From sequence record NC_048047.1: a stretch of 64,000 nucleotides of DNA, one strand, 5' to 3'. This document shows positions 5,276 to 63,196 of this stretch, in pieces; position 1 is the stretch's first letter; each line of letters begins with the position of its first letter. The position numbers and the translations under genes were made by a program. A model generated the notes under the pieces. The model had not been told where the DNA came from, did not search any database, and was given only the letters and a program-made list of their open reading frames with translations.

Positions 5276-8200
5276 TTGGCCAACCTTGATCTCAACACGC
5301 CCGTCTCCGCCACCTACACAGGTGCGTCGGCGTCGTACGTCGCGACGTCGGATGGTCAGGTCACGCTCCACATGTGGGGCGGCGCGGGCGCGGGCGGTTA
5401 CTATTCGGCCGGCAATGGTGTCGCCAATCGCTATGGCGGCTCGGGCGGCTACGCCACCGTCCGCTTCATGGTCAAGGTCGGCGACGTCGTCGACGTCGAA
5501 GTCGGGCAAGGCGGGCAGGTCGCGGCAGGTTCGGCCACCACGGCGGCGAATGGCGGCGCTGGTGGCTGGCCTGATGGGGGTTACGGCGGCAAGTCGTCGT
5601 CCGTCAGCCCATCCTCGATCGGCTTTGGCGGCGGCGGCGGGTCGACCCGTGTCTACCTCAATAGTGAACTGGTCGCGGTGGCGGGCGGTGGTGGTGGCGC
5701 CACGGGTTTCTATTCCGGCGGCAACGGCGGCCACGTCAACGGCATGCAGTCGACCGACGCCTCTTCGGGCGCGGGCGGCACTCAATTTGCCGGGGGCGTC
5801 GCAGGCTCGGGCACCCTGGCCATCCAGAGCGGCTCCTATTTCAAGGGTGGCGCAGGCGGTGCATCGTCCTCGACGGCGCATGCGTTTGCTGGCGGCGGCG
5901 GTGGTGGCGGCTACTATGGTGGCGCCTCCAACGGCGGCGGCTCGGGCGCGCACGGCTCTGGTGGCGGCGGCTCGGGCTGGCTCAACCAGGACACCATCTA
6001 TACGGGCCGCCTGCGCTCTGGCCCGCAGGACAATGCTGGCACGCCGTACGATGTGCCGGGGATTCGACCCGCCGGTGTCGCGCAAGGCGGCACCAACGTT
6101 TTGGCGGCCGGGAACTGGGCCTCGATCACGCCCGGCGGCAATGGCTTTGTCTATCTGGCGCTGACCGATCCTTCCGACGGTGCTCCTGACCTTCCGACCG
6201 GCTCCACTCAGGTCGACTATAGCGGCGCCCGGCAGGTCTACAAGGTCGCCAACATCTGCTCGGTCGACTTCGAACTGTGGGGCGGCGGCGGCGGCGGCGG
6301 CTTCTATACCTCGGGTGGCAACGCCGCGCGCTGGGGCGGCGCGGCCGGCTACACCAAGCTTACGCGCGTCTTCTATCCTGGCGACCTTATCGAAATCGAG
6401 GTTGCCCAGGGTGGTCAATCGCCGTCTGGGGTTAGCCAGACGGGCGGCGCGGGCGGCTGGCCCAACGGCGGCGACGGCGGGCGGCCAACGGCAGGCACGC
6501 CAAACTTCGGCGGCGGCGGCGGCTCCACCAACATCTATGTCAACGGTCGCTTGCTGGCTGTCGCCGCTGGCGGCGGCGGCTCCACGGGCTTTTACTACGG
6601 CGGCAACGGTGGAGGCCGCTATGGTCTCCAGTCGACCGACGCCACCGCCGCCAACGGCACGGCGGGCACCTGGGGCGGGATCAACACCACCTCCAGCGCC
6701 AACCGTGGCTACTACATGTTCGGAGGCCACGGGTCTCCGTTGGAATCTTCGACGATCGCCACGGCCTTGGCAGGGGCAGGCGGCGGCGGCGGCTATTTTG
6801 GCGGCGGCGGCGCCAAGGGCGGCTCGGGCACGCACGGCTCGGGAGGCGGCGGCTGCGGCTATGTCTCCGGCGACAACACCTACAATCGCGACATGCAGCT
6901 TGGTGTGGCGGGCACGGGCCAGCCCTACACCGGCTCCAACAAGCCCGCTGGCGTCGGCGTAGGCGGCACGGGCGGCTCCTCGGCGGGCACGTCCTCGGCC
7001 GGCGGCAATGGCTGCTGCCTGATGACCATGTCGGTGATCACGCCCGCCACCTTGCCGACCACCAAGACCGCCACCGTCTTCACCGGCGCGGCCGAGCACT
7101 TCATCGCGGGTTCTGGCGGCGTCCTGGCTGTCAAGCTGTGGGGCGCGGGCGCGGCGGGCGGCGTGCGCGCCTCGGGCACCCTGCAACGCGGCGGTGGTGG
7201 CGGCTTCCTGCAAATCGACTTCATCAAGATCAAGACCGGCGATCTGGTCACCTTCGTCACCGGCGAGGGTGGTAAGGGCATGCCTGGAGGCACCCTGGGC
7301 GGTCGAGGCGGCTGGCCCAATGGTGAAGGCGGCAACGCCGCCGACGCCACGGGCGGTAGCGGTGGTGGTGGCGGGTCCTCGCACGTCTATGTGAACGGCG
7401 TGCTTGTCGGCGTGTCCGGCGGCGGCGGCGGCGGCTCGATCTCGTTCTCGGGCGCGACCGCTGGCCTTACGTCCTATCCGCCCAGCAGCGACAACTTCAA
7501 CGTCAACGGCTCCAGTCTGACGATCGGCGGCTGGTCGCCCCAGCGCGGCGCCGAGGGCAACAACCGTGGCGTCTTCATGCTGGGTGGCATGGGGCAGATC
7601 GACGGCAACCTCACGATCGACACGCCCAACAACCTCTGCGGCGGTGGCGGCGGCGGCGGATATTACGGCGGTCCAGGCGCGGTTCCCCTGAACTCGCGAT
7701 ACCAAGGCGGCGGTCCTGGCACGACCTATATCGCGCCGGGTTACAAGGGCACGGCGATTCAAGGCGCCGCAGCAGGCTCCAACATCTCCGACGCCGATTG
7801 GGGCAACAGCGCCAGCGTCGGCGGCCAAGGGGCGAACGCCAGTGGCAACTCCGTCTTGAATGGCGGCCACGGGCGGATCGTCTATGAGTTCACCGCCGCC
7901 CCCAATCTGGACGAAAGCATTGTCACCGCCGTGCCGGTGCAGAGCAACGTCCAGCACTATGTCGCGGCCAACGACGGCAACCTCGTGCTCAACGCCTGGG
8001 GGGCGGGCGGCGGCGGCTCGATGATCACCAATGGTGGTGGCGGTGAACGCGGCGGCGGCGGCGGCTACGCCGCAGGCACCATCGCCGTCAAGAAGGGCCA
8101 GATCATCAGCTTCTACAACGGTAGAGGCGGTGGCGGGGCCAACTACACCAGCGGCGCATCGGGCTCGTTCGTCGGCTCGGGCGGCGCGGGCGGCTGGCCA

Positions 8201-11200
8201 GACGGTGGCGTGGGCGGCTTCAACTCCGCCATGATCGCCGGCGGCGGCGGCGGCTCCTCGCGGGTCTATGTCGACAACGTCCTGATGATGGTCGCAGGCG
8301 CCGGCGGCGGCCTGGGCGATGGCACGACCACGCGCACGCCCGGCGGCGGCGGCGGTACGACCGGGGGCACTTCTGACGCGCCCTCTGGCCAAAACAACGG
8401 CGGCTTCCAGTATCGAGGGGGCTTTGCCACCGGGACTGCGGCCAAGATCATCGACGCGACCTCGTCGGGTAGCTGGTTCCGAGGCGGTTCGGGTTTCCCG
8501 GCGGGCGGCGCGGCCAACGTCTCCAATGCGGGGGCTGGCGGTGGAGGTGGCGGCGGCCTCTACGGCGGTGCGGGTTCGGGTAACGCCAGCGTCTTCATCG
8601 GCGGTGGCGGTGGCTCGGGCTTCATTGCCGACGGCTGGGGCGTCATCGATGCCGATCGCTACGCCGCCTATACCGGTGCTCAGTGGAGCTTCGAAACCGG
8701 CACGATGGCCGATGACGGCCGCTCGGTCGATACGATCCTGCTCGACACCGCGCCGACCACGACTTCCAGCGGACCTCGTTACGGCACGGCCTGTGGCAAC
8801 TTCCCTGGCACTGGGCACCTTACCGCGCCCTTGCCGCGTATTATTGGCACGCAGGACTTCACGATCGAGGGATGGTTCAGTCCGACCTCGATCGCGACGG
8901 GTGTGTTGTTCACGATCGGCGACCAGAGCATCAACGGCCTGTCGCTGCACTACTATCCCGAAACGACGACGCTTGGCCTGCGTTACAACAACAACGGCAC
9001 GGGCGCCAACGATCTCAAGTACACCGATTCGGCGCGTCAAGCGGCCGTTTGGGCGCACTATGCCGTGGTCCGCGATGTCAATGGCACGCGCGTTTACAAG
9101 AATGGCGTTCTAGTCTCCAATATTGGCGGCGCGCCCGTCGCCATGACGGCCACGACCGTCACGATCGGCAACTACAACGCTGTCGCGGGCGCGTCCACGC
9201 GCTTCAACGGCAAGGTTGACGAATTCCGCGTCACCATCGGCGTCGCGCGTTATCGTCAGAACTTCAAGCCGGTCCCGCTCCGCAACACCTTCTCGCAAAT
9301 CCCGACCCTGACGACCCTCACCCAGGGCACGAACGGCGTCACGGGCCAGCCGGCGGGCACGGCGGTCTCCGGCTATATCTCCGGCCGTGGCGTGGGCGCG
9401 CAGACGCGCCAGTCGGTCGGCAACGGCAATACGGGCGGCGACGGGCAGATCAACTACTTCGTGGCCACCTCGACGGTGGCCGCGTCGGGACCGATTGGCA
9501 CCGTCCTCGTCAACGGCTTTGATGCCGTCGCGGGCGCCTCCTACGACTTGCCGCCCGCGCCCGGCGTGGTGGTTGAGTCTTTCGCCTCGGTGCGCACCAG
9601 CTACATGGCGGTCACGCCAGGGCAGACGCGCGTTCGGGTCGAGATGTGGGGCGCGGGCGGCGGGGGCTGCTCTGGCAACAGCAGTCTGACGACCAACGGC
9701 GGCGGCGGCGGCGGTTACACCGTCTATGAAGTTGACCTCAATCAGTACGACCGCATCACGGTCCAGACGCCCTCGGGCGGCGGCGGCGCGGTCGACGCCA
9801 ACGGCACCGGTCCTGGGGGTTTTGGCGGTTACCCTAACGGTGGCAAGGGCTACCGGCCAGCGACGACAACCTTCAACGGCGGCGGCGGCGGCTCGGCGCA
9901 GCTTTGGGTGCAAGGCGCGCTCGCGGCCGTCGCGGGTGGGGGTGGTGGCGGTTCCTACGGGAGCGTGGCGTCCGATTATCGCGGTGGCGCGGGGGGTGGC
10001 GCCACGGGTGAGAACGGCTTCAATGACCTGAACGGCGGCGGCTCGCAGTCGACGGGTGGTTACGGCTCTGGCAATGGTCAGGCCGGCAGCTATCTGCAAG
10101 GTGGCCAAGGCGGCGTCAGCGAAGGCATCGCGGGTAACGGGTCTGGGGGCGGCGGCGGCTATTACGGCGGCGGTGGCGGCGGCCCTGGCTTTGGCGGGAG
10201 CGGCGCGGGCGCGGGCTCCGGCTTTGTAAATCTGACCATTCCGGGCTACCGCACCGGCTCGACGGTTGGCGGTTCGGGCAACCTGCCGGGCAACACGACC
10301 TCGCCTAACTACGTGGCGGGCATCGGCGTAGGCTCGAACGGCAAGGGCGGAGCGCGCCTGCACGGCGGCAACGGCCGGATCGTCATCTCGGTCATCACCC
10401 CGACGCCGGCTGCGGTTTCGGGTGACATCGGCACGGTCAATGTCATTGCACCGCCGACTGTCGGCTATATCACCGGCACGCCGCGCGGCAATATCGGCAC
10501 GATCCAGGTTGTGCCGCCGGTCGGCCAGTACGGCTTCCCGGCGAACATCAACGCGCCGCTGCCGACGGTCACGATCAATCCGATCGAGTCCAACCCGACG
10601 ACCAGCGCCCTGGTCATCGTCCCGATCAACGATAGCACCTCGATCACGATCACCGGCGTTGAGCCGGCGCCGTTCCACGTCGATGGTGAGGGCACGGGCG
10701 AGACGCCGCCGATCCTGGTGGTTTCGCCAGAACCGACGGTGCTCATTCCCGGCGGGGCCGCCGGTTCGTTGGTGGACATCACCATCGAACCGCCCTTGGC
10801 GGTCGTCAACGTCATCGAGCCGGTCTATGCCTTCGGTGACATTGGCACGATCACCATCGAGCCTCTACTGGGCGAGACCGACGTCAACAATGACGTCTTC
10901 CCGTCGGGCAACATCGGCACGATTCTGGCGATCGCGCCAGAAGGCGTCGCCGAGCCCGGCCCGCCCAATGTCATCGGCGACCTGAAGACGATCGCGGTCG
11001 TCGCGCCTGAAGGCGCGGCGCGCGCCGGCGCGTCCATCACTGGCGACTTTGTCGACGTTCTGGTCATTGCGCCCGAAGCGGGCGTGGATGGCAATGCGCT
11101 GGGCGACCTCGACTTCATGTCGGTTCAGGTCGTGCCGCCCCTGGTCTCGGTCAGCGTCTTCCAGGACGGCGAGACCAACATCTACGCCGATCCGGGCATC

Positions 11201-52214: not shown

Positions 52215-55200
52215 ATGGCCGAATATACGCCCATCCTCCATCTGCCTCAGGTTGCACCCAACCAGGACCAGAAGGAAACCACGATCAACACCGCCCTGGC
52301 CATCCTGGAGGCGGCGTCCAACGACACGCTTGAGGTGTCGTTGACGGCGGGTGACGTCACGCTGAACACTGACGAGTACACCAAGTATTTCCATCACCAG
52401 TTCTACGGGCACACCTCGCTCCGCACGGTTACCTTGCCTGCGACCAAGCGTTGGTTCAGTGTCGAGAACCAGGGCACGGCGACGATTACCTTTCAAATCC
52501 TGGGCTCGTCGGGTCTTTCGGCCGAATTGGCTTCAGGCAAGATCGGTCTGGTGGTTTCCGACGGCACGGACCTGCGCTTTGTCGTCCCCGACCCGACCAG
52601 TGGCTTGGGCCTGCTGACTGATCTCTCCGACGTCGACGGCGGCCAGACCGATGGCCAGCTTCTGCGTTGGTCGAACGCGTTCAGCGCCTGGAAGCCGTGG
52701 ACGTTGGACTTCTCGTTCCTGAACCTGAACGACACGCCCACCACCTATGTCGGTAACGTCGGCAAGCTGGTCGCGGTCAAGGGCGACGGCACGGGCCTGG
52801 AGTTTGTCTCCTCGGCAGCCAATGTCAATTCGTTCGTTGATCTGGACGACACGCCGGGCAGCTACAGCGGGGCGCCCAATCGTACGGTCAAGGTCAACGG
52901 TGCGGCCTCGGCGCTGGTGTTCGACTGGCCCAAGCTGACCGAAGCCTCCGATTTCGTCTCGTCCTACGCCGGCGCGGCCAACAAGTTCCTGCGCGTCAAG
53001 ACCGACATGACGGGCGTGGAACTGCATGCGCCCGTCGTGGCCGACCTGACCGATGGTCCTGGCGCCCCGACGGGCAACGCCTTGAAGTACCTGCGTGTCA
53101 AGGCCGACGGCACGGGCGTCGAATACGCCACGGGCACGGGCGGCCCGGACGACTTCCTCGAACTGCTCGACACCCCTGACAGCTATGCCGGCAAGGGCCT
53201 CTACTTCGTTCGCGTCAAGGCTGATCTGACGGGCCTGGACTTCCTGCGCGCATCCTTCACCGACCTGATCGACGTTCCCAGCAGCTACACCGGCCAGGGC
53301 GGCAAGTATGTGAAGGTCAATGGCGGCGGCACGGGTCTGAGCTTTTCGGCGCCCACGGTCCAGGAACTCGCCAACGGTCCGGGCACCCCGGCGGCTCAGA
53401 ATGGCAAGGTGGTCCGCGTCAAGCTGGACGGCACGGCGCTGGAATACGCCATCCTGCCGATCACCACGCTCTCGGGTTTTCCGTCGAGCTTCAATGGCCA
53501 GGGCGGCAAGTACCTCCAGGTCAAGGGCGACGAAACCGGTGTCCAGTTCGTCACCTCCTCCTACACCACCAATTTTCTGGCCCTGACCGATACGCCTGAC
53601 AGCTATGCGGGACAGGCAGGCAAGGCGATCGTTGTTGATCCGACGGGCTCGGGCCTGATCTTCGCCTCGCCTTCCGGCGGCGCCTCCAAGCTTGATGACC
53701 TCGACGATGTGGAGTTCCCTACGGGTACGCCGGCCGATGGCATGGTCCTGACCTTCCGGGGCGGCATGTGGTCGCCGGAAGTGTCGGCCGGTGGCTCCGA
53801 CGGCACCTTGGCGAGCTTGACCGATGTTGACCTGACCTCGCCGACCGACGGACAGACGCTGGTCTATCGCGGTGGCGACTGGGTCAACGAAGACACGGCC
53901 GGCATGGGCGTGCCTTCGTTTGGTGAGCACACCTACTGGCGCCTCCTGCTGCACACCACCGACGGCTCGACCGCGCAGTACGGCATCCAGGAAATCCAGT
54001 TCAAGCACACCAAGACTGGCCCGGACATGGCCAACGGCGGCACCGCCTCGGCCAGCAGCGATGAGTTCGGCACCGTCAGCGGCGCCTTCGACAACGTGAT
54101 CAGCGGGGCGTGGTTCTCGGCAACGGCCGCCAACGGCGAGTGGATCAAGTACCAGTTCACCACCCCTGTCGACGTCCGTTACATGACGATCCAGGGCTCG
54201 CAGTCCCAGCCCAACACCTCGCCGGCCTCGTTCTCCGTCCAGTTCAGTGATGATGATTCGGCCTGGACGACGGCCTGGGAAGTGACCGGCCAGACTGGGT
54301 GGGCTCCGGGCCAGACGCGCGAATTCCACGCTCCGGTCGACTTCAACTTCACCGATTTGGCCGACGTGCCTCAGTCCTATATCGGGCAAGGCTTGAAGGC
54401 GCTGCGTGTCAACACCGCCGGCACGGCCCTTGAGTTCTTCACCCTGCCCTTCGTCCCGACGCAGATCGGCGATCTGGCCGATGTCGAGATGGGCACGGGC
54501 ACGCCGGCCGAAGGCTCGGTCCTGACCTGGAAGGATGGCGTCTGGCAGGCCGAACCCTCCTCGGGTGGCTCGGGCGGCGGGGCAAGTTCGTTCCTGGGCC
54601 TCAACGATACGCCAAACAGCTACGAGGGCCAAGGCGGCAACGCCGTGCGGGTCAAGGTCAACGAGAGCGGCCTGGAATTCTACACCCCCACCGGCGGTGG
54701 CGGAGGCGGAAGCTATCGCGGCATTTGGGCGTCCGGTGGCGAACAGGTGATCATCGACTTCGAGGACAGCGACCTCGGAGATGAACTGACCTACGACGCG
54801 TCAGGCTACACCGTCGTGAGCCAACCCGACGGTACGGCCGGCACGACGAAGGCTCTGAAGTTCCGCCCCATCCCCGGCAGCGGCCTCTGCTACGCCGAAC
54901 TCTCCGCCGCCTTCCTGAATGTTCAGCCTGTGAAGGTCCGCTACAAGGTCTCGTCCGAGGGCGGCTTTGACTTCTTCAGGATCATCCTGGACGGCACCAC
55001 GCAGATTCTGATCGATTCGGGAGCGACCGGACTCTATGAGGAGTTCACCTATCCTCTGGTGGGCAACCACACTCTCCGTTTCCAATATAGCAAGGACGGT
55101 GGGGGAACGGCCGGTGACGACACCGTCTACATTTCCCAGATCACTTACTACACCACCCAGTCCAATCCTTACCTCTATGGCGACACGGTCTCCTACCAGG

Positions 55201-57065
55201 ATCGGATGTGGTTTTGCCGCGTGCCCAATACCACCCAGGAGCCGGGCGCGGGAGACGAATGGATCGAGTGGAAGGAAGCCCTGAGCGACCTGAGCGACGT
55301 TGACCTGACGTCGACGCCAGCGGACGGGCAGGCGCTGGTCTATGACGTCGTCTCGGGCAAGTTCAAGCCGGGTACGGTGAGTGGCGGAGGCGGGGGCGGC
55401 AGCTACAACGCCGGCATTGGTCCGCGCACCCGCGTTCGCCGCGCGGCGACTCAGTCGGTCGCTACCGCGACCTGGACGGCAGTCCAGTGGGATACCGAAT
55501 CCGAGGACGCCGTCGGCGCTTTCGCCAGCGGCGCCAGCACCCGTATCACTGTACCGGCGGGCGTCAGCGCCGCGCGCGCGACGGGCTATGTTAACTGGAA
55601 CGCCAGCGTGTCAGCCGCCCTCATCGGCGCGGCCCTGCGCCGCAACGGCGTGGAAATCGGTTCGACCGGCGGCTCCAGCATCGTGGCCTCGCGCGAGGGC
55701 CTCAACCAGTCGCCGCTCAATTTCACGACTGAGTGGTTCCCTGTCACGGCCGGCGATTATTACGAACTCTTCGTCCTGCAAAACAGTGGGGCTAACGCCA
55801 ACCTGAACGGCCCTGTCACGGCCTTTGGCGAAGGCACCTACCTCCAGTTTGAGTGGGACGACGGCACCTCGCCTGGGGACGCCGAAGCTGGTGATTTCCA
55901 CGCGCCACACCAAGGCTGGCGCATCCTGGTGACGGCCAGCCAGACCGACACCTACGCCACGATCTCGGAACTGAAATTCTACAACCGCAGTGGGACACAG
56001 ATCGCCACCACGGGCGGCAAGGTCGTCGACACCAATTCGCACGCGACCTATCCGGCGTCGCAGGCCTTCGACGGCAACACCAGCACCTATTGGTCGTCGA
56101 TCCAGCAGACCTCGACGGGGCTCTTTGGCGGGCCGGGGTACCTCTTCGCGACCGCCGTCGATGTCGGATCGATCAAGATCACTTCGACGGGCACGGACTT
56201 CAACACCACCAATTCGCCCAAGACCTTCGTCGTCCAGTACACCGATGATGGCGGCGCCTCGTGGACCACCTATGCCACCTACAGCGGACAGACCGCCTGG
56301 GGCGACAAGGAAGAACGCACCTTCGTCCTGCCGCTCGCGGGCGTCGCCCGCGTAGGCGGCGCGCGCACCTTGGACGAACTTCAAGATGTCGCGATCGTGG
56401 GCACGCCCAAGCATGGGGACATCCTGCGCTATGACGGCGCAAGCCAGACTTGGAACCGCAAGACCCCGTGGGGGTATGCTCCGCCCAAAGCGGCGGATTT
56501 TCCGACCCTCCTGGGCACGGTTTCGCTCACCCTGGCCGATGATGACGACGTCGGACTGATGGTGGACTGCGGTCAGAGCACGTTCGGGGATATCCAACGC
56601 ATCGCCGTCAAGGCCCTGCCCGGAGGCGGGGTCGACTGGACGGTGACGGCTAAGATCGTCGATCATCTGTTGCCGTACAACTACAACGGCGTCGGCCTCA
56701 TCATGCGGGAATCCTCGACGGGCAAGATTGCCATGTTCGGGGTGGAAAACACTACGAACGTCAGCACCTCGCAATCCTTGCGCAAGCTGCGCTATAGCCG
56801 GCTGCCGGGATTGTCGGGGTTCACGTCCAATCCCTATTCGGACTTCTCGCCGTCTGGGGCTCAGTGGTACCGTCTCAAGAACACCGGTGGTCTTCTGACG
56901 GCCTGGGTTTCGACCGATGGAAAGATGTGGCGCCAAATCTATCTGGAATCCAGTGGCGGTTCTTTCACCTCGGGGCCGGACCAGATTGGGATCGGCTGCT
57001 CGCTGAACGCCAGCTACTCCCTCAATCCCACCTTCTCGGTCCCGTACTGGGCTCAGAGTTTCTAA
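52215..57065 (+). CDS. Long tail fibre (1616 aa) with a repeat shaft and carbohydrate-binding-type domains
   Basis: DUF2793-like N-terminus; repeated L.D.P.SY.G...K..V...GTGLEF units; two discoidin/F5-8-like modules (YWRL...I.EI.F; approx. 53925-54330 and 55910-56330); ConA-like C-terminus. Confidence 0.9.
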   Translation: MAEYTPILHLPQVAPNQDQKETTINTALAILEAASNDTLEVSLTAGDVTLNTDEYTKYFHHQFYGHTSLRTVTLPATKRWFSVENQGTATITFQILGSSGLSAELASGKIGLVVSDGTDLRFVVPDPTSGLGLLTDLSDVDGGQTDGQLLRWSNAFSAWKPWTLDFSFLNLNDTPTTYVGNVGKLVAVKGDGTGLEFVSSAANVNSFVDLDDTPGSYSGAPNRTVKVNGAASALVFDWPKLTEASDFVSSYAGAANKFLRVKTDMTGVELHAPVVADLTDGPGAPTGNALKYLRVKADGTGVEYATGTGGPDDFLELLDTPDSYAGKGLYFVRVKADLTGLDFLRASFTDLIDVPSSYTGQGGKYVKVNGGGTGLSFSAPTVQELANGPGTPAAQNGKVVRVKLDGTALEYAILPITTLSGFPSSFNGQGGKYLQVKGDETGVQFVTSSYTTNFLALTDTPDSYAGQAGKAIVVDPTGSGLIFASPSGGASKLDDLDDVEFPTGTPADGMVLTFRGGMWSPEVSAGGSDGTLASLTDVDLTSPTDGQTLVYRGGDWVNEDTAGMGVPSFGEHTYWRLLLHTTDGSTAQYGIQEIQFKHTKTGPDMANGGTASASSDEFGTVSGAFDNVISGAWFSATAANGEWIKYQFTTPVDVRYMTIQGSQSQPNTSPASFSVQFSDDDSAWTTAWEVTGQTGWAPGQTREFHAPVDFNFTDLADVPQSYIGQGLKALRVNTAGTALEFFTLPFVPTQIGDLADVEMGTGTPAEGSVLTWKDGVWQAEPSSGGSGGGASSFLGLNDTPNSYEGQGGNAVRVKVNESGLEFYTPTGGGGGGSYRGIWASGGEQVIIDFEDSDLGDELTYDASGYTVVSQPDGTAGTTKALKFRPIPGSGLCYAELSAAFLNVQPVKVRYKVSSEGGFDFFRIILDGTTQILIDSGATGLYEEFTYPLVGNHTLRFQYSKDGGGTAGDDTVYISQITYYTTQSNPYLYGDTVSYQDRMWFCRVPNTTQEPGAGDEWIEWKEALSDLSDVDLTSTPADGQALVYDVVSGKFKPGTVSGGGGGGSYNAGIGPRTRVRRAATQSVATATWTAVQWDTESEDAVGAFASGASTRITVPAGVSAARATGYVNWNASVSAALIGAALRRNGVEIGSTGGSSIVASREGLNQSPLNFTTEWFPVTAGDYYELFVLQNSGANANLNGPVTAFGEGTYLQFEWDDGTSPGDAEAGDFHAPHQGWRILVTASQTDTYATISELKFYNRSGTQIATTGGKVVDTNSHATYPASQAFDGNTSTYWSSIQQTSTGLFGGPGYLFATAVDVGSIKITSTGTDFNTTNSPKTFVVQYTDDGGASWTTYATYSGQTAWGDKEERTFVLPLAGVARVGGARTLDELQDVAIVGTPKHGDILRYDGASQTWNRKTPWGYAPPKAADFPTLLGTVSLTLADDDDVGLMVDCGQSTFGDIQRIAVKALPGGGVDWTVTAKIVDHLLPYNYNGVGLIMRESSTGKIAMFGVENTTNVSTSQSLRKLRYSRLPGLSGFTSNPYSDFSPSGAQWYRLKNTGGLLTAWVSTDGKMWRQIYLESSGGSFTSGPDQIGIGCSLNASYSLNPTFSVPYWAQSF

Positions 57066-57084: not shown

Positions 57085-57732
57085 ATGCGTCATTACTGGA
57101 AGGTCCCCCGACTTTGGGTTGGGGAGACCGCTGTGCTCATTGGTGGCGGCCCGACTGTCCGCGACGTTGATCTTTCGAAGATTGAAGGCCGAGCCCGCGT
57201 CATCACCTTGAACAATTCATGGGAATTGGCGCCGTTCAACGATATCCACTTCTTCGCCGACACCCGCTGGTGGCGCTGGCATGGACAGAAGTTTCCCGCC
57301 GACTATCCGGCCAGGATTGTCACCGTGTCCAAGGGCGACCTAGGCCCTGGAGGCGAGCGCGTTTTCCGCATGCGGAAGGAACACGCCGGCGGGCTCTGCA
57401 CGGACCCGCAAGGCGTCTACGGCCGTGACAGCGGCATGATGGCCATGAACCTCGCCTTCAACCTGGGTGTCAGCCGTATCGTGCTGATCGGCTACGACAT
57501 GCGCTTCACGGCCGGCGAAGGCCATTGGCACGAAGATCATCCGATCGAGGCCAAGGAAAGCTACTACACCGACGAGTTCGCGCCGGAATATCCGCCCGTC
57601 GTCGCCCAGATCGAAGCGGCCGGCGTCGAGGTCCTTCGGATCACGCCTTCGGCCCTTGACTTCATCCCCCAGGTCACGTTGGAAGATGCGCTAAGCCGCC
57701 CACCGCGCCATCGAAACGACATCTATGTCTAG
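57085..57732 (+). CDS. Maf/DUF115-like (sialyltransferase-fold) putative glycosyltransferase
   Basis: LIGGGPT, ITLNNS, DSG..A.NLA..LG..RI.LIGYD. Confidence 0.65.
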   Translation: MRHYWKVPRLWVGETAVLIGGGPTVRDVDLSKIEGRARVITLNNSWELAPFNDIHFFADTRWWRWHGQKFPADYPARIVTVSKGDLGPGGERVFRMRKEHAGGLCTDPQGVYGRDSGMMAMNLAFNLGVSRIVLIGYDMRFTAGEGHWHEDHPIEAKESYYTDEFAPEYPPVVAQIEAAGVEVLRITPSALDFIPQVTLEDALSRPPRHRNDIYV

Positions 57733-58549
57733 GGCCTATGTCGACCTGAAGGACAATCCGCACTATCGGATGTCCAGCTTCATTAACGGCTTGGCGCGCT
57801 TGGGCTACACGGTACGGCGCGGCCTGCCGGATCATCCAGTCGAACCCGGCGATGTCGCCCTGATCTGGAACCGGCTGGGCCGTTCGGTCCAGGCCGAGAA
57901 GATGGTCAAGGCCGGCGGCGGCGCCTTGATCGTCGCCGAGAACGGCTACCACGGGCAAGACGCCGACGGCAATCAGGCCTACGCTCTGGCGCTCGACGGG
58001 CATAACGGCTCGGGACGCTGGTTCGTCGGAGACCAGAGCCGCCTGGACGCCTTGAAGATCGACTTCAAGCCCTGGCGAACCCAGCTTAGCGGGCGGTTCT
58101 TGGTCGCGGACCAGCGCGGCATCGGTTCACCGATCATGCGATCGCCCGCCATGTTCGCCGAACGCATGACCGCCCTCGTTGAAGCCCAGGGCAAGAAGGC
58201 CTATGTCCGGCCCCATCCCGGCCGAAACAAGCCCATCCGCAGCTTGATGCAGGACCTGGAGGACAAGGAGGGCCTGATCGTTTGGTCCTCCAACGCGGCC
58301 ACCGAGGCGCTGATCGCTGGTGTGCCTGTGCATTACGCGGCGCCAGCAATCGTGACACGAGGCGCGGCCAAGCGCTTGACAACTCCTTTCTTGTGGAATA
58401 GCGATGTCGATGCCCGCCCGGACGCTTTCAAGCGACTGGCCTGGGCGCAGTGGTTCCTCCACGAGATCGCCTCTGGCGAGGCCTTGAGGACCCTGCTCGA
58501 CGTCCATCAGGGGAAACTCCCCGCCGTGCAGGAAGGGTTTGGCATTTGA
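57725..58549 (+). CDS. KpsC/KpsS-like GT-B putative glycosyltransferase
   Basis: YVRPHPG...VWSSNAATEALIAGVPV...LAWAQW...EIASG. Confidence 0.7.
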   Translation: MSRAYVDLKDNPHYRMSSFINGLARLGYTVRRGLPDHPVEPGDVALIWNRLGRSVQAEKMVKAGGGALIVAENGYHGQDADGNQAYALALDGHNGSGRWFVGDQSRLDALKIDFKPWRTQLSGRFLVADQRGIGSPIMRSPAMFAERMTALVEAQGKKAYVRPHPGRNKPIRSLMQDLEDKEGLIVWSSNAATEALIAGVPVHYAAPAIVTRGAAKRLTTPFLWNSDVDARPDAFKRLAWAQWFLHEIASGEALRTLLDVHQGKLPAVQEGFGI

Positions 58550-59406
58550 GCAATCACGGGGTCTTCAAGCCGCCGTTTGTGGTGATCCAGCGCGGCAAGG
58601 AGAAATCCGAGATGCTCGCCAAGGCCGTCGTCAAAGGCTTTGGCCTGGACGTGGGCCGCATCGGCTATGAAACGCCCCTCGCCGACATCCCTGACACGTT
58701 CATGCCGGTTTATGTCGGCGTCCATCCAACGACCGTTCAGTCCTTGCGCGACTGCCATGCCGCCCGCCGCCCGTTCGTCACCGTCGATAACGGTTACTTC
58801 CGAGGCTACAAGCGCGGCGGCTACTTCCGCCTGACGACCAACGCCATGCAGTGGGCGCAGCGTAGCCACGAGGCCACCGCCGAGGATATCGCGCGCTTTC
58901 AGGCGCTGGACATGCCCGTTCAGCCGCTTCGGCTGAGCCAGGGCGAGCATATCCTGATCGCCTGCCAATCGCCGGCGTGGTACCAGATGATGGGCCTGGG
59001 CAGCGTCGAGGCCTGGGTCAATCCGCTGGTCGATCGGCTGCGCCTGATCACTGACCGGCCCATCCGCGTGCGTCAAAAGCCGCTCAAGGGCGTCAAGGAG
59101 CCTCCGATCGAGGAGGACTTGAACAAGGCCTGGGCCGTCGTGGCCTTCTCGTCCAACACTCTGATCGAGGCGTCCTTGATGGGCATCCCGATCTTCCCGA
59201 TGGCGTTCAGCGCTGCCACGCCCTTGGGTAGCGACGACCTCTCGACCATCGAGAGCGCGCCGTTCCGCAACCAGCGTACCGTCATCCGTCCCGAGGTGTT
59301 CGCCCAACTGGCCGGCGCCCAGTGGACGGTCCCTGAAATCGAATCGGGCAAGGCATGGCTGGACCTCAGCCGCCGGTACGACCCCGATTTCAAACCCCTG
59401 GCCTAA
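58546..59406 (+). CDS. Second KpsC/KpsS-like GT-B putative glycosyltransferase
   Basis: TTGA overlap start; IRVRQKP...VVAFSSNTLIEASLMGIP...LAGAQWT..EIESG. Confidence 0.7.
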   Translation: MSNHGVFKPPFVVIQRGKEKSEMLAKAVVKGFGLDVGRIGYETPLADIPDTFMPVYVGVHPTTVQSLRDCHAARRPFVTVDNGYFRGYKRGGYFRLTTNAMQWAQRSHEATAEDIARFQALDMPVQPLRLSQGEHILIACQSPAWYQMMGLGSVEAWVNPLVDRLRLITDRPIRVRQKPLKGVKEPPIEEDLNKAWAVVAFSSNTLIEASLMGIPIFPMAFSAATPLGSDDLSTIESAPFRNQRTVIRPEVFAQLAGAQWTVPEIESGKAWLDLSRRYDPDFKPLA

Positions 59407-59415
59407 GGAGCCCAC

Positions 59416-60234
59416 ATGCCCTTCCATGTCTTCGTGGGCTACGATAGCCGCGAACAAGCCGCCTATGACGTCTGCGTGAGCAGCCTGACCGAGCACAACG
59501 TCGGCGATGATCGCGACGTCGTCGTTCATAAGCTGGAGCACCGCGACCTGCGTCGGCGCGGCCTCTTCGATCGTCCTTGGCGGATCGATGAGAAGGGCCA
59601 GTATTGGGACGTCCGCGACACGCGGCCGTTCTCCACCGAATTCAGTCACAGCCGTTTCCTGGTGCCGTCAATCGCGCGGAACATGGGCATCAAGGCGCCG
59701 GTCATGTTCGTCGACTGCGACTTCCTGTTCCTGGAGCCGGTGCAGAGCCTGTTCGATCAGGTTCTGGCCACCGTGCCCAAGAAGGACGGGAGTCACCCAC
59801 TCTGGGTCGTCAAGCACCAGTTCAGCAAGGCCGATGAAGGCGTCAAGATGGACGGCATGGTCCAGCAGGCCTACTTCCGTAAGCTATGGTCCAGCCTGAT
59901 GATCTACGATTTGAGATTCTCCAATCGCTACGGTTGGTTCCCCACCCAGAGCGACGCCAATCACATGTCGGGCAGCGCGCTCCACAGCTTCGGCCACTCG
60001 ACAGCGCAGCCCCTTGACGAGGACCTGATTGGCGCCCTCGACATGGGCTGGAACTGGATTCCGGGCCACTCCGAACCCCTTGACAAGCCCCAGGCCGTCC
60101 ATTGGTCGCTCGGCGGCCCGTGGATGGAGGGCTATGAGGACGTGGCCTACGCCACCGCATGGCGCCAGTATCACCGCGCCGCCCTCCTACAGCAAACGGG
60201 CCTCTTGCCCCGCACCCAGATCAAGGCCGCCTGA
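59416..60234 (+). CDS. GT-A (GT8-like) glycosyltransferase
   Basis: VFVGYDSRE, STEFSHSRFLVP, DCD (DxD motif), RKLWSS.M and HWSLGGPW. Confidence 0.8.
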   Translation: MPFHVFVGYDSREQAAYDVCVSSLTEHNVGDDRDVVVHKLEHRDLRRRGLFDRPWRIDEKGQYWDVRDTRPFSTEFSHSRFLVPSIARNMGIKAPVMFVDCDFLFLEPVQSLFDQVLATVPKKDGSHPLWVVKHQFSKADEGVKMDGMVQQAYFRKLWSSLMIYDLRFSNRYGWFPTQSDANHMSGSALHSFGHSTAQPLDEDLIGALDMGWNWIPGHSEPLDKPQAVHWSLGGPWMEGYEDVAYATAWRQYHRAALLQQTGLLPRTQIKAA

Positions 60235-60761
60235 TGTCCGACACGATCTCCGAAGCCTACCGCTCGCTCAACGCGGCCCTGCACGGCGAAAATCCTTCCT
60301 ATGGCGCCAACGGCTGGCAATGGATCGGCCCGGTCCTGCATTTCGCCCAGGCCCACGACGCCCGCTCGATCCTAGACTACGGCTGTGGCAAGGACAGCTT
60401 CGCGCGCTGGGCGCCGCAGACCGCGCCCAACATCCGCTACGAGAGCTACGACCCGGCCATTCCCGAGCACGCCGCGCCGCCGCCGATCTGCGATTTCGTC
60501 GCGTGCCTGGACGTGCTGGAGCACATCGAGCCGGACCATCTCGACGCGGTCCTGGCCGACATCCGCGATCACATGCGTCTGGGTGGATTCTTCGTGATCT
60601 GCCTGCGCGCGGCCAAGAAGGAGCTTCCCGATGGTCGCAATGCCCATCTGATCATCGAGAGCGATGGCTGGTGGATCGACCGTCTGAAGACCATCTTCGG
60701 TGCCGTCCACAAGATCAAGGGCCTGTCCAAGGACAGCCTCGTCGTCCACGTGGAGCGCTGA
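60234..60761 (+). CDS. Class I SAM-dependent methyltransferase
   Basis: ILDYGCGK, YDP and DVLEHIEP; TGATG coupling. Confidence 0.85.
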   Translation: MSDTISEAYRSLNAALHGENPSYGANGWQWIGPVLHFAQAHDARSILDYGCGKDSFARWAPQTAPNIRYESYDPAIPEHAAPPPICDFVACLDVLEHIEPDHLDAVLADIRDHMRLGGFFVICLRAAKKELPDGRNAHLIIESDGWWIDRLKTIFGAVHKIKGLSKDSLVVHVER

Positions 60762-60764
60762 TCC

Positions 60765-61622
60765 ATGGGCATCGGCGACAAGATGATGGCGATCGGTGAC
60801 GCCTGGAAATTACACCAGGAAGACCCGCTCAAGCGCAAGGTCGCGATCGGCGATGGCCAGATCGTCGACCCGACCGACAACGACCTGCTCTGGGGCCTGG
60901 ACTTCGTGGCGCGCGCCGGTCAGACCAACAAGGACACGCCCTGGGTGATCAGTCACCCCGGTACACGTCCCTATATCGACTACCGCGCCATGCGCCGAGA
61001 ACTGATCCGCCAGGGACGCCGGCCCTTCAAGCACAAGAAGCTGGCGGCCATGCTGGGCAAGTTCATCTGGAACATGGACTATCGCCCGACGCCGGCGCCC
61101 ATCCGACTGACGACCGACGAGGAGATGATCGTCGCCCGTTGGGCCAAGGAGCCCTTCGTGGCGATCGAGCCCTATATCAAGGCCTCCGCGCCAGTCGCCA
61201 AGCAGTGGCCGATCGAGTACATGACCGAGACGGTCAAGCGCCTGCGTAAGGAGGGGATCAAGGTCGTCCAGATCAGCGCCGGCGGTCAGCCGATCATCCC
61301 CGGCGCGGTGATGGCCGCTACACGGTCCTATCGCGAGGCCCTGGCCGTCCTCAAGGCCGCCAGCCTCTATGTTGGCCCCGAAGGCGGACTCCACCACGGC
61401 TCGGCCGCCATGGGCACCAAGGCCGTCGTCATGTTCGGCGGCTACATCAGCCCGCTGACCACCGGCTATGACTTCCACGTCAATCTGACGGGCGGTGCCT
61501 ATGAACCTTGTGGTCACCGCGACGGGGTCTGTCCGCACTGCGTCGAGGCCATGGCGCAGATCACGCCCGATCTCGTGATCGACCATTCGCTGCGGCTGCT
61601 GCGCGAGACCGTGACGGCCTGA
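60765..61622 (+). CDS. GT9 (heptosyltransferase-like) glycosyltransferase
   Basis: GIGD at the N-terminus; LYVGPEGGLHHGSAAMGTKAVVMFG. Confidence 0.8.
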   Translation: MGIGDKMMAIGDAWKLHQEDPLKRKVAIGDGQIVDPTDNDLLWGLDFVARAGQTNKDTPWVISHPGTRPYIDYRAMRRELIRQGRRPFKHKKLAAMLGKFIWNMDYRPTPAPIRLTTDEEMIVARWAKEPFVAIEPYIKASAPVAKQWPIEYMTETVKRLRKEGIKVVQISAGGQPIIPGAVMAATRSYREALAVLKAASLYVGPEGGLHHGSAAMGTKAVVMFGGYISPLTTGYDFHVNLTGGAYEPCGHRDGVCPHCVEAMAQITPDLVIDHSLRLLRETVTA

Positions 61623-61627
61623 AAACA

Positions 61628-61661
61628 GAGGCTTGACGGATCGTCAAGCCTCTGTTACATG
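61628..61661 (+). promoter_or_regulatory. Lysis-cassette promoter with a palindrome over the -35 box
   Basis: GAGGCTTGAC-ggatc-GTCAAGCCTC; TTGACG-17 nt-TACATG. Confidence 0.55.
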
Positions 61662-61729
61662 CTATGATTCTTGACACGAGACGTTAACCATGACACGAAA
61701 GGGGACTTCTCCCCTTTCGTGAGCATCTC

Positions 61730-62365
61730 ATGCGCGTCTCTCCCGCAGGTCTGGCCCTGATCCAGGCCTGGGAAGGCATCGAAGACGGCGATCCGTCGAC
61801 GGTCCTTCTCGACCCCTATATCGACATGGTCGGCATCTACACCATCGGCTGGGGCCACGTGCTGCTCACGCCCGCTGGCCAGCAGATCAACATCAACGTC
61901 TTCGGCCGCGCCAAGGCCAAGACCCTGGCCACCCAGGCGATGATCCGTATGTTTGGCGTTCCAGCGATCACGCGCGAGAAGGCCGAGGAACTGCTTCGCG
62001 CCGACATCGTCTCGTTCGAGAACGCCGTGGCCGGCATGGTCGCCAAGGACACCACGCAAAACCAGTTCGACGCCATGGTCGCCTTTGCGTTCAACGTGGG
62101 CAAGACGGGCCTGTCCAAGTCGTCGCTGCTGCGGCTCCACAACGCCGGCAAGCGCGCCGTGGGCACGCTCGACGTCGCCAACCTGATCGCCACCTCCAAG
62201 GCTCAGAAGGCGCCGACCAACATCCCGCAAGGCTTCACCTCCTGGTCGTATGCGGCCAAGAAGTGGACCCGTGGCCTGTTCCGTCGCCGCTGCTCCGAAG
62301 CCCTGGTCTATGGCGGCATGCCCGGCGCCCAGGCCTTCAAGCAGGTCCAGGCCTATGCCGCCTAA
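61730..62365 (+). CDS. Endolysin, GH24 phage lysozyme
   Basis: GLALIQAWEG...YIDMVGIYTIGWGH, QFDAMV.F.FNVG and GLFRRR. Confidence 0.95.
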   Translation: MRVSPAGLALIQAWEGIEDGDPSTVLLDPYIDMVGIYTIGWGHVLLTPAGQQININVFGRAKAKTLATQAMIRMFGVPAITREKAEELLRADIVSFENAVAGMVAKDTTQNQFDAMVAFAFNVGKTGLSKSSLLRLHNAGKRAVGTLDVANLIATSKAQKAPTNIPQGFTSWSYAAKKWTRGLFRRRCSEALVYGGMPGAQAFKQVQAYAA

Positions 62366-62666
62366 CCGCCGCCTGAGCGAGAATTCGGTCAGCCGTGTTC
62401 GCCGGGCGATCTTCGCCTTCTTCCTGACGCTGCTCTGCTGGGCCAGCATCATGACTCTGGCGCGCTTCCCGGTCCCGGTCAACCAGGAGATCGTCAACAA
62501 GGCGATCGACACCCTGGGCTTCTTCGCCACCGCCATCGGTCTGGGCTACATTGGTGGCTCTGTCGTCGACTTCTCGGGAATGTTCAGCGCGATCGGCGGC
62601 AAGTTCGGCATCAGCATCCCGCAGGCCCAGCCCCAACCCCGCAACGACGAGATCGGAGGCGTCTAA
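62355..62666 (+). CDS. Putative holin (103 aa, 2 hydrophobic helices)
   Basis: Overlaps the endolysin end; AIFAFFLTLLCWASIM and FFATAIGLGYIGGSVV hydrophobic segments. Confidence 0.7.
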   Translation: MPPNRRLSENSVSRVRRAIFAFFLTLLCWASIMTLARFPVPVNQEIVNKAIDTLGFFATAIGLGYIGGSVVDFSGMFSAIGGKFGISIPQAQPQPRNDEIGGV

Positions 62667-63196
62667 TGCTTGGCTTCCTCTTTGGACACTTCGATCTCCT
62701 GGGATTCATCTTCGGGCATCCGAAGGTGATCCTAGGCGTCATCGTCCTGGCCTTGGCCGCCGGCCTGATCATCTTCAAGGGCGCGTTTCTGAAGTTCATC
62801 ACCAACGCCCGCGTGCTGTTGGTGATCGCCGTCGCCGTCGGCGTCCTGTCGGTGGCGAGCGTCAGGCGGGACATGGCCACGCTTGAAGCCAAGAACGCCC
62901 ATTTGACCGAGCAGGTCCAGGCCGTCACCGACGGCGCCAAGGCCGTCACCCATAAATCCGAGGCGCAGCGCGTGAACGCCCAAAACACCGCGCGCCTGCA
63001 CGAGGTAATTTCCCATGCAAAGCCCGACCAAGCCCTCGACGACGTCCTCGACGAGATCGCCCTTCAGCAAGGCCAGAACGTCCCTGGCGGCGCTGGCGGT
63101 GATCCTGTCGCTCAGCCTGTCGGCGTGCGCAACGACGTCCCAGCCGCCCATCAGCCCGGAAGCATTGATCCCAACGACATTGACCGTCTGCGCTGA
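62666..63196 (+). CDS. Inner-membrane spanin (Rz-like)
   Basis: N-terminal transmembrane segments followed by a coiled coil; position in the lysis cassette. Confidence 0.75.
   Translation: MLGFLFGHFDLLGFIFGHPKVILGVIVLALAAGLIIFKGAFLKFITNARVLLVIAVAVGVLSVASVRRDMATLEAKNAHLTEQVQAVTDGAKAVTHKSEAQRVNAQNTARLHEVISHAKPDQALDDVLDEIALQQGQNVPGGAGGDPVAQPVGVRNDVPAAHQPGSIDPNDIDRLR

Follow-up and report, generated by a model that had tools for sequence, protein, structure and literature searches.

A putative glycan-building gene cassette in the late tail operon of Caulobacter phage CcrBL9, a candidate system for virion glycosylation

Introduction

Among tailed phages, glycosylation of the virion by the phage's own enzymes is, to our knowledge, established only in mycobacteriophages. 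In bacteria, cytoplasmic glycosylation of a fiber protein, flagellin, is carried out by Maf proteins, and bacterial enzymes of the KpsC and GT9 types act on lipid-linked acceptors, not on proteins. Glycosylation of the mycobacteriophage capsid and tail tube (Freeman et al. 2023, summarized in PMC12619734) provides a precedent for the locus described here, a six-gene cassette of Caulobacter phage CcrBL9. In both cases, virion proteins would be glycosylated in the cytoplasm by transferases that the phage encodes. The two systems differ, as far as the mycobacteriophage work is described in that summary, in host (that of CcrBL9 is Gram-negative), in enzyme families (KpsC-fold, DUF115, GT8-like and GT9-like in CcrBL9) and in gene position, with the CcrBL9 cassette located after the tail genes and, in small phages, the same module between genes for head and neck. 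For the mycobacteriophages, glycosylation is reported as demonstrated, whereas for CcrBL9 we infer it. No account of the cassette was found in the literature searched, and it looks like an unreported form of phage virion glycosylation.

A second class of phage glycan genes, the Gtr-type cassettes that convert the O-antigen during lysogeny, is different, since these contain membrane-embedded transferase and flippase components and are located apart from structural operons. In CcrBL9, no hydrophobic segment was found in the six proteins, and the genes lie within the late tail operon.

Results and Discussion

Gene organization

The window, which is the whole stretch of 64,000 nucleotides that was analyzed, corresponds to bases 62001–126000 of CcrBL9 (100% identity). 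Positions 57085–61622 are filled by six co-directional open reading frames on the plus strand, which are also the six coding sequences of the RefSeq record. The cassette is located where the original prediction had placed it, between a tail gene 19 nt upstream and lysis genes, with an endolysin as the downstream neighbor. The features are:

52215–57065, plus strand: last tail gene, 1616 aa (phrog_11660, 1980 bits)
57085–57732, plus strand: g1, 215 aa, putative transferase, DUF115/MptE-like (Maf-/sialyltransferase-related; phrog_4603, E 1.4e-40)
57725–58549, plus strand: g2, 274 aa, GT-B with the fold of KpsC/WbbB, retaining β-Kdo transferases (AF2 model, Foldseek)
58546–59406, plus strand: g3, 286 aa, divergent paralog of g2 (BLASTP)
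59416–60234, plus strand: g4, 272 aa, GT-A, nearest to retaining GT8/GT24 (phrog_28018, E 5.5e-76; Foldseek)
60234–60761, plus strand: g5, 175 aa, class I SAM-dependent methyltransferase (PF13489; phrog_24759, E 3.2e-29)
60765–61622, plus strand: g6, 285 aa, GT9-like, heptosyltransferase-type (PF01075, 28.9 bits)
61624–61656, plus strand: 15-bp hairpin just past the g6 stop (ΔG −28.9 kcal/mol)
61730–62365, plus strand: endolysin, the downstream boundary of the cassette (PF00959, E 1.5e-25; phrog_7)

The genes are tightly packed, every junction being an overlap or a gap of at most 9 nt. The g1 and g2 genes overlap by 8 nt (g2 ATG at 57725, g1 stop at 57730–57732), g2 and g3 by 4 nt (TTGA, g3 start at 58546), and g4 and g5 by 1 nt (ATGA, g5 start at 60234). 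The gap between g3 and g4 is 9 nt and contains AAGGAG, and that between g5 and g6 is 3 nt. No terminator-like site was found within the cassette. The hairpin that follows g6 (z −6.9; 0 of 200 shuffles equally stable) likely ends or stabilizes the tail-plus-cassette transcript, and it overlaps a promoter-like site for the lysis genes at 61641–61668. Long open reading frames on the opposite strand of this region (for example, 58507–59649, minus strand) were discarded as artifacts of high G+C content. DNA methyltransferase genes are located a few kb downstream of the cassette.

All six proteins are predicted to be soluble, with neither membrane segments nor signal peptides. The dN/dS ratios against CcrSC are 0.05–0.18 across the six genes, indicating purifying selection and thus real, constrained genes.

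The g1 protein

The start of g1 is better placed at the ATG at 57085 than at the GTG at 57133 annotated in RefSeq, because of the lengths of the homologs (212–222 aa) and the N-terminal residues that they share; the conserved N-terminus of these homologs thus upholds the start originally chosen. Like the Maf/DUF115 flagellin nonulosonic-acid transferases, members of the g1 family match PF01973: all 10 aligned members do so at E 0.01 or better (best E 4.2e-9), and precomputed matches were found for 9 of 10 g1 homologs, a set that leaves out the CcrBL9 protein. The CcrBL9 protein itself, with 19.9 bits, does not reach the Pfam cut-off of 34.6. Matches of the family to the GT42 sialyltransferase Cst-II are weak (E 0.6–1.8). 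Motifs rich in His and Asp, and other polar residues, are invariant in the family. In contrast to Maf proteins, which are far longer and have extra flagellin-binding domains, g1 is a single domain of 215 residues; its homologs are likewise single-domain (176–222 residues for the family), and the multidomain Maf architecture is absent from all of them.

The paralogs g2 and g3

Neither g2 nor g3 matches a Pfam family, and the complete CcrBL9 genome, scanned to E 10, contains no match to PF05159 (Capsule_synth). Single-sequence searches of the PDB with g1, g2, g3 and g6 gave chance-level matches only, and the g4 family profile gave none, so that folds were needed. The AF2 model of g2 (pLDDT 93) has KpsC as its best Foldseek match (8fuw, E 1.7e-7), and its VIA Z scores are 12.4 for KpsC and 11.7 for WbbB, compared to 8.7 or less for ordinary GT-B enzymes. 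A profile search also places KpsC first among PDB chains, at E 0.3. The Atlas neighbors of g2 are 81–100% viral, and the nearest clusters that bear a Pfam family carry PF05159.

g2 thus shares with KpsC/KpsS and WbbB (GT107/GT99; PDB 8fuw, 6mgc and 5fa1) both the fold and the HP motif, His164-Pro165, which is invariant in 44 sequences and aligns with the HP of KpsC. It differs from them in sequence (identity ∼15%, no PF05159 match) and in that its family, with 469 homologs, is almost wholly viral. g3 is related to g2 (27% identity, BLASTP E 2e-12); where g2 has VRPHP, g3 has VRx(K/W)P, such that the HP motif is absent. As adjacent paralogs, g2 and g3 are reminiscent of KpsC, in which two transferase modules, 2,4 (6mgb) and 2,7 (6mgd), are arranged in tandem. 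The segment of g2 that would be expected to hold the nucleophile, residues 126–136, contains invariant Gln130, Arg131 and Gly134. Asp129 is present in 12 of the 44 sequences, and no invariant Asp was seen at the presumed position of the nucleophile (Asp160 of KpsC, Asp232 of WbbB). Since both proteins are outside Capsule_synth and no such invariant Asp was seen, their chemistry may differ from that of KpsC. The acceptor of the g2 family, unlike that of KpsC and WbbB, is probably not a lipid. The two proteins are candidates for a branch of the Kdo-transferase fold that is directed at proteins or unusual in some other way.

The g4, g5 and g6 proteins

No Pfam family, Glyco_transf_8 included, matches g4 at E up to 0.01. 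Its AF2 model (pLDDT 90) is similar by Foldseek to XXYLT1, LARGE1, WbbM, GlyE, UGGT, LgtC and glycogenin (E 3e-8 to 5e-5). g4 resembles the GT8/GT24 enzymes (LgtC, glycogenin, XXYLT1, GlyE and UGGT), several of which elongate protein-bound glycans, in its GT-A fold and in an invariant DxD metal site, Asp100-x-Asp102. A total of 414 homologs of g4 were found. It differs from the GT8/GT24 enzymes in the lack of a Pfam or PDB match at the sequence level (identity 11–15%).

g5 matches PF13489 (Methyltransf_23) with 38.2 bits against a cut-off of 27, and g6 matches PF01075 above its cut-off of 22 bits. A profile of the g6 family finds both WaaF (1PSW, E 3.8e-7) and WaaC (E 1.2e-5), and the C-terminal nucleotide-sugar domain of g6 aligns with those enzymes, including the K-x-W and acid-G-G/L-x-H motifs. 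The alignment begins only at residue ∼112, such that the acceptor domain is not covered; with 285 residues compared to 326–348, g6 is ∼40–60 residues shorter and has a short N-terminal domain. Its conserved residues are Asp5, Lys146, Glu206 and three cysteines (Cys249, Cys256 and Cys259, in a C-x6-C-x2-C motif), and this three-Cys motif also sets it apart from WaaC and WaaF. The motif raised the possibility of a protein heptosyltransferase of the TibC/Aah type, an assignment that was rejected, with a weak NCBIfam match (E 0.042) and no TibC in the PDB profile search.

Evidence from Pfam, profiles and folds bears out the family originally proposed for each of the six products and supports the notion of a glycan assembly line. 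A different view, which we regard as quite improbable, is that some products, especially the small g1, are virion or assembly components without catalysis. In GenBank, "structural protein" is the label given to ORF010 of Pseudomonas phage PAJU2, which is homologous to g1 (28% identity), D3-type phages have g1 alone among their head-neck genes, g3 is without the HP motif, and g1 is under its Pfam threshold. The invariant motifs of g1, the DxD of g4 and the donor-site residues of g6 are, however, what active enzymes keep, and methyltransferases and NDP-sugar enzymes accompany the module elsewhere.

Distribution in relatives and other phages

The cassette is kept in all Bertelyvirus, CcrPW and CcrColossus genomes and is absent from the smaller phiCbK-type relatives. 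In the genomes of Karma and Rogue, the endolysin gene comes directly after the ortholog of the tail gene or is separated from it by two small genes. The cassette is an insertion relative to these smaller relatives.

The g2 family is found at no fewer than 215 loci (viral contigs) in IMG/VR and at 21 loci in 185,579 species genomes, most of them beside phage structural genes. Among 44 loci with enough flanking sequence, g2 is accompanied by g3 in 36, by g1 and by g4 in 33 each, and by g6 in 31, with the usual order g1-g2-g3-(methyltransferase)-g6-g4; unlabelled genes within the module are mostly methyltransferases, with a few NDP-sugar-modifying enzymes. In unrelated environmental phages, the module is located within blocks of head and tail genes, usually between head and neck genes. 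By tallies made with crude ORF calling, the three genes on its 5′ side mostly encode capsid, portal, prohead protease, collagen-repeat or terminase proteins, and the three on its 3′ side mostly head closure, neck, head-tail adaptor or major tail proteins. A collagen-like or CBM-tailed fiber protein is encoded directly 5′ of g1 in at least 25 of 88 loci, several with a 4-nt overlap. Conversely, g1 is found within 2.5 kb downstream in 26 of 72 loci carrying that fiber domain.

Proposed pathway and its acceptor

The original prediction placed a glycan on the fibers or capsid of the virion, with shielding or receptor mimicry as its suggested roles. The gene context agrees with this, as the module is within head/neck operons of many unrelated phages and often directly 3′ of a collagen-like fiber gene; the glycan itself is inferred and its donors are assigned from fold. 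A location within the head and tail blocks of hundreds of unrelated phages makes virion proteins the most likely carriers. From gene position and protein fold only, we consider it moderately likely that the cassette glycosylates virion proteins in the cytoplasm with host nucleotide sugars. The six genes would constitute a late-expressed cytoplasmic pathway in which g1, g2, g3, g4 and g6, together with the methyltransferase g5, may assemble a short, methylated, mixed oligosaccharide that is attached, ahead of virion assembly or while it proceeds, to at least one virion protein. By analogy, the donors would be CMP-ulosonic acids, such as CMP-Kdo or CMP-pseudaminic acid, for g1–g3, a UDP-sugar for g4 and ADP-heptose for g6. 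Three families of nucleotide-sugar synthesis, CTP_transf_3, NTP_transferase and Epimerase, were searched for in the CcrBL9 genome and none was found, and the donors would thus come from host pools. The likeliest acceptor would be either the fibrous product of the tail gene adjacent to g1 or a different virion protein exposed at the surface. Donors, acceptor and virion location of the product are all predictions.

The host envelope, the second option of the original prediction, is another conceivable target. The enzymes would then act on lipid-linked host glycoconjugates on the inner side of the membrane (inner core of LPS, a Kdo-lipid anchor or a capsule primer), and a late surface change would, for example, block superinfection or binding of progeny to debris. 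The closest solved structures of g2 (KpsC, WbbB and KrkA) and g6 (WaaC and WaaF) do use lipid-linked acceptors, Kdo-type and heptose-type transferases together recall the assembly of the LPS core, and in two MAG loci (L099 and L100) the module is flanked by cellular metabolic genes. We nevertheless find this explanation unlikely: membrane segments are absent from all six proteins, the g2 family occurs almost exclusively in viruses, and expression from a late structural operon leaves little time for replacing existing surface LPS. Moreover, unlike typical conversion genes, the module of small phages is surrounded by head and neck genes and in some cases overlaps a fiber gene.

We know of no DNA-glycosylating enzyme among the KpsC-, GT9- or DUF115-type folds. 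That the cassette glycosylates bases of the phage DNA, or makes a glycan that is free or secreted, seems highly improbable, as no nucleotide-metabolism or hydroxymethyl-pyrimidine gene is nearby and the genes are within structural operons in all phages examined, even though DNA methyltransferase genes lie downstream in CcrBL9 and DNA-modifying phage glycosyltransferases are well known, as described in PMC12619734.

Returning to virion glycosylation, we tentatively suggest a broader possibility, that the cassette represents a widespread, undescribed module, in phages mostly of apparently Gram-negative hosts, that might use host LPS-core precursors (CMP-Kdo and ADP-heptose) and other nucleotide sugars on fiber or capsid proteins, with g1 acting first, on the fiber protein encoded just upstream. 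It would include two glycosyltransferase families (g2/g3 and g4) matched by no Pfam model; both are large and nearly all viral, and the models allow predicted folds to be assigned to them. If this holds for phages that infect Proteobacteria, glycosylation of environmental virions would be common, given that at least 215 viral contigs carry the module, with bearing on phage stability, adsorption, host and immune recognition, and the interpretation of cryo-EM density. Caulobacter crescentus and its giant phages are genetically accessible and not pathogenic, and they offer a tractable test system.

The upstream tail protein

The 1616-residue tail protein is the immediate upstream neighbor of the cassette and a candidate glycan acceptor. 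It contains two lectin-like domains of the F5/8 type C family and a CBM5/12-like segment at approximately residues 982–1016. A collagen-like protein was searched for in CcrBL9 and none was found. An HMM of the C-terminal domain of the fiber proteins encoded upstream of the module in small phages has this tail protein as its top match in the CcrBL9 genome (E 3e-4), followed by matches at E 0.0098 and 0.026.

Organization of the cassette

The window corresponds to positions 62001–126000 in the genome of CcrBL9, a 322-kb Bertelyvirus. The cassette lies between the last tail gene and the endolysin gene, and its whole interval is filled by six co-directional ORFs (g1–g6).

Features of the cassette and its flanks (window coordinates)
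55158–55262: CBM5/12-like segment, residues 982–1016 of the 1616-aa tail protein (domain HMM plus weak Pfam CBM_5_12 match)
57085–61622, + strand: six-gene cassette, CcrBL9 genome 119085–123622, 100% identity
57085–57732 (g1) and 57725–58549 (g2), + strand: 8-nt overlap
58546–59406 (g3), + strand: 4-nt overlap with g2, TTGA
59416–60234 (g4), + strand: 9-nt gap after g3, containing AAGGAG
60234–60761 (g5), + strand: ATGA overlap with g4
60765–61622 (g6), + strand: 3-nt gap after g5
Within 61616–61668: hairpin 3′ of the g6 stop, 15 bp, ΔG −28.9 kcal/mol, z −6.9, poor T-tail
Overlapping this hairpin and facing the endolysin gene: promoter-like site, sigma-70-like TCGTCA-16-TATGAT with an upstream TG

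Only 19 nt separate the stop codon of the last tail gene, which encodes the 1616-aa protein, from the start of g1, and a scan of 57085–61622 found no terminator-like sites inside the cassette. The hairpin following g6 may be a processing or stabilizing element instead of a simple terminator. RefSeq has the identical six CDS and calls four of these 'hypothetical protein'. The dN/dS values relative to the related phage CcrSC are 0.05–0.18 across g1–g6, and purifying selection acts on all six genes. Amino-acid identity to CcrSC is 77% for g1, 85% for g4 and 95–96% for g2, g3, g5 and g6; g1 and g4, which diverge much faster, could be the enzymes that determine which acceptor or donor is used. Past the endolysin gene (62355–63196), a 103-aa ORF is followed by a 176-aa protein with a match to a membrane-protein PHROG (E 9e-20) and weak matches to Rz-like spanins. 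The two probably serve as holin and spanin in the lysis cassette.

Enzyme families

RefSeq starts g1 at GTG 57133 (199 aa), whereas the original prediction placed the start at ATG 57085 (215 aa). Homologs of g1 are 212–222 aa long and share the additional N-terminal residues, and the CcrSC protein aligns from residue 1. The upstream ATG is therefore the likelier start, and we prefer it to that of RefSeq. The g1 protein matches phrog_4603, labelled 'alpha-2,3-sialyltransferase' (E 1.4e-40), and its family profile weakly matches Cst-II sialyltransferases. Its score for PF01973 (MptE-like/DUF115) is under the cut-off, and all ten aligned family members match PF01973 (best E 4.2e-9).

The g2 protein (469 homologs) has no match in Pfam, PHROG or NCBIfam. 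Its structure model, built with 44 homologs as input, has a pLDDT of 93. In Foldseek, the retaining β-Kdo transferases KpsC, KrkA and WbbB rank first (E 1.7e-7), and VIA gave Z scores of 12.4 for KpsC and 11.7 for WbbB, compared to at most 8.7 for ordinary GT-B enzymes. KpsC is also the top PDB hit of the family profile, with the invariant H164-P165 aligned to the KpsC HP motif. Protein-atlas neighbours of g2 are mostly viral (viruses make up 81–100% of members having a record), and the closest clusters with a Pfam family belong to Capsule_synth. The g3 protein is paralogous to g2 (27% identity, E 2e-12); in the g3 family, VRx(K/W)P replaces the VRPHP of g2. By analogy, the adjacent paralogs are reminiscent of KpsC, which has two Kdo-transferase modules in tandem.

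The g4 protein (414 homologs) matches phrog_28018 and was assigned to no Pfam family in our Pfam search. Its model (pLDDT 90) resembles retaining GT8/GT24-type GT-A enzymes, namely XXYLT1, LARGE1, WbbM, GlyE, UGGT, LgtC and glycogenin, and D100-x-D102 is invariant in the family. Above-cut-off matches identify g5 as a Methyltransf_23 SAM methyltransferase and g6 as a GT9 member. The g6 family profile aligns to the nucleotide-sugar domain of WaaF (E 3.8e-7) and WaaC (E 1.2e-5); the N-terminal domain is short, and D5, K146, E206 and a three-Cys motif are conserved. Thus, all family calls of the original prediction stand, but those for g1, g2/g3 and g4 do so by fold or weak profile, outside the curated sequence models. 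None of the six proteins contains a membrane segment or signal peptide.

Distribution of the module

The cassette was found in all Bertelyvirus genomes, CcrPW and CcrColossus, where genes are labelled 'sialyltransferase-like', 'nucleotide-diphospho-sugar transferase' and 'family 9 glycosyl transferase'. Karma and Rogue, relatives of ∼220 kb, have the endolysin gene downstream of the orthologous tail gene, either immediately or beyond two small genes. Because Karma and Rogue lack the cassette at this site, we regard it as an insertion at the tail/lysis junction of the giant lineages.

Relatives of g2 occur at no fewer than 215 loci in IMG/VR, compared to only 21 loci in 185,579 species genomes, most of which adjoin portal, capsid, protease or terminase genes. 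When ORFs were labelled by the six family HMMs at 44 loci with enough flank (Caulobacter giants left out), g2 was accompanied by g3 (36 of 44), g1 (33), g4 (33) and g6 (31), most often in the order g1-g2-g3-(methyltransferase)-g6-(about 220 aa)-g4. Most unlabelled genes within the module encode class I or FkbM methyltransferases, and a few encode sugar C-methyltransferases, DegT aminotransferases and a dehydratase/epimerase. By tallies built on simple ORF calling, the three genes upstream are chiefly capsid (10), portal (9), prohead protease (9), collagen-repeat (8) and terminase genes, and the three downstream are chiefly head closure (14), neck (12), two head-tail adaptor families (9 each) and major tail genes.

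Six small phages (L041, L053, L070, L082, L084, L113) carry g3 in two or three tandem copies. Three T7-like or marine contigs (L007–L009) encode a 1700–2400-aa protein directly followed by a g4-like gene and a 520–775-aa DUF115 protein, which in L007 and L008 also has a weak methyltransferase match; in L009, as in CcrBL9, a gene for lysozyme lies beyond these. In two MAG contigs labelled Anaerolineae and Alphaproteobacteria (L099, L100), g1-g2-(g3)-g6-g4 lies amid cellular metabolic genes (copper amine oxidase, hydroxyacyl-CoA dehydrogenase, ABC transporter), with no phage structural genes in the flanks, and may represent either a cellular copy or the remnant of a prophage.

Proposed function and candidate acceptor

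All our functional claims draw on fold and profile evidence together with gene position. The most economical reading, to which we lean slightly, is that a virion protein is the site where soluble enzymes build a methylated hetero-oligosaccharide. Judging from gene position, they would be produced alongside the virion proteins. CcrBL9 has no gene of the CTP_transf_3, NTP_transferase or Epimerase families, so the putative donors would be host nucleotide sugars; the g2/g3 pair and the GT9-like g6 suggest, by analogy, the use of LPS-core precursors. The main alternative, modification of lipid-linked host glycans, draws on the enzymes structurally closest to g2 and g6, which act on such substrates. 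We consider it unlikely, since neither the absence of membrane components nor the module's conserved place within the head-neck gene block is readily reconciled with it.

If a virion protein is glycosylated, the fibre protein upstream of g1 is a candidate acceptor. At 25 or more of 88 loci, the gene directly upstream of g1 carries a conserved CBM5/12-like C-terminal domain, in 17 cases together with collagen-like repeats, and at several of these loci the two genes share 4 nt. Conversely, of 72 viral loci with this domain, 26 carry g1 no more than 2.5 kb downstream; in roughly half of these 26, g1 is the sole module gene detected. The best match of the domain HMM in CcrBL9 is the 1616-aa tail protein immediately upstream of the cassette (E 3e-4; next two ORFs, 0.0098 and 0.026), a candidate acceptor. 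This match is suggestive, not conclusive, since phage fibres often contain modules of this kind.

Mycobacteriophages are known to encode enzymes that glycosylate their virions, as summarized in PMC12619734, whereas the CcrBL9 case is proposed from fold, profile and gene position and involves other enzyme families and hosts. A search of the literature library accessible to us found no paper discussing the cassette or module. The genes themselves are already deposited and partly named; the different enzyme families and host range would be new.

Within the proposed pathway, g1 would be the best candidate for the step closest to the acceptor protein. Alternatively, g1 may itself be structural or virion-associated, as the GenBank label 'structural protein', given by the depositors to its homolog in Pseudomonas phage PAJU2 (ORF010, record 7780–8349), hints that DUF115-like proteins could travel with the virion. 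D3-type Pseudomonas phages carry a lone g1 homolog amid head and neck genes.
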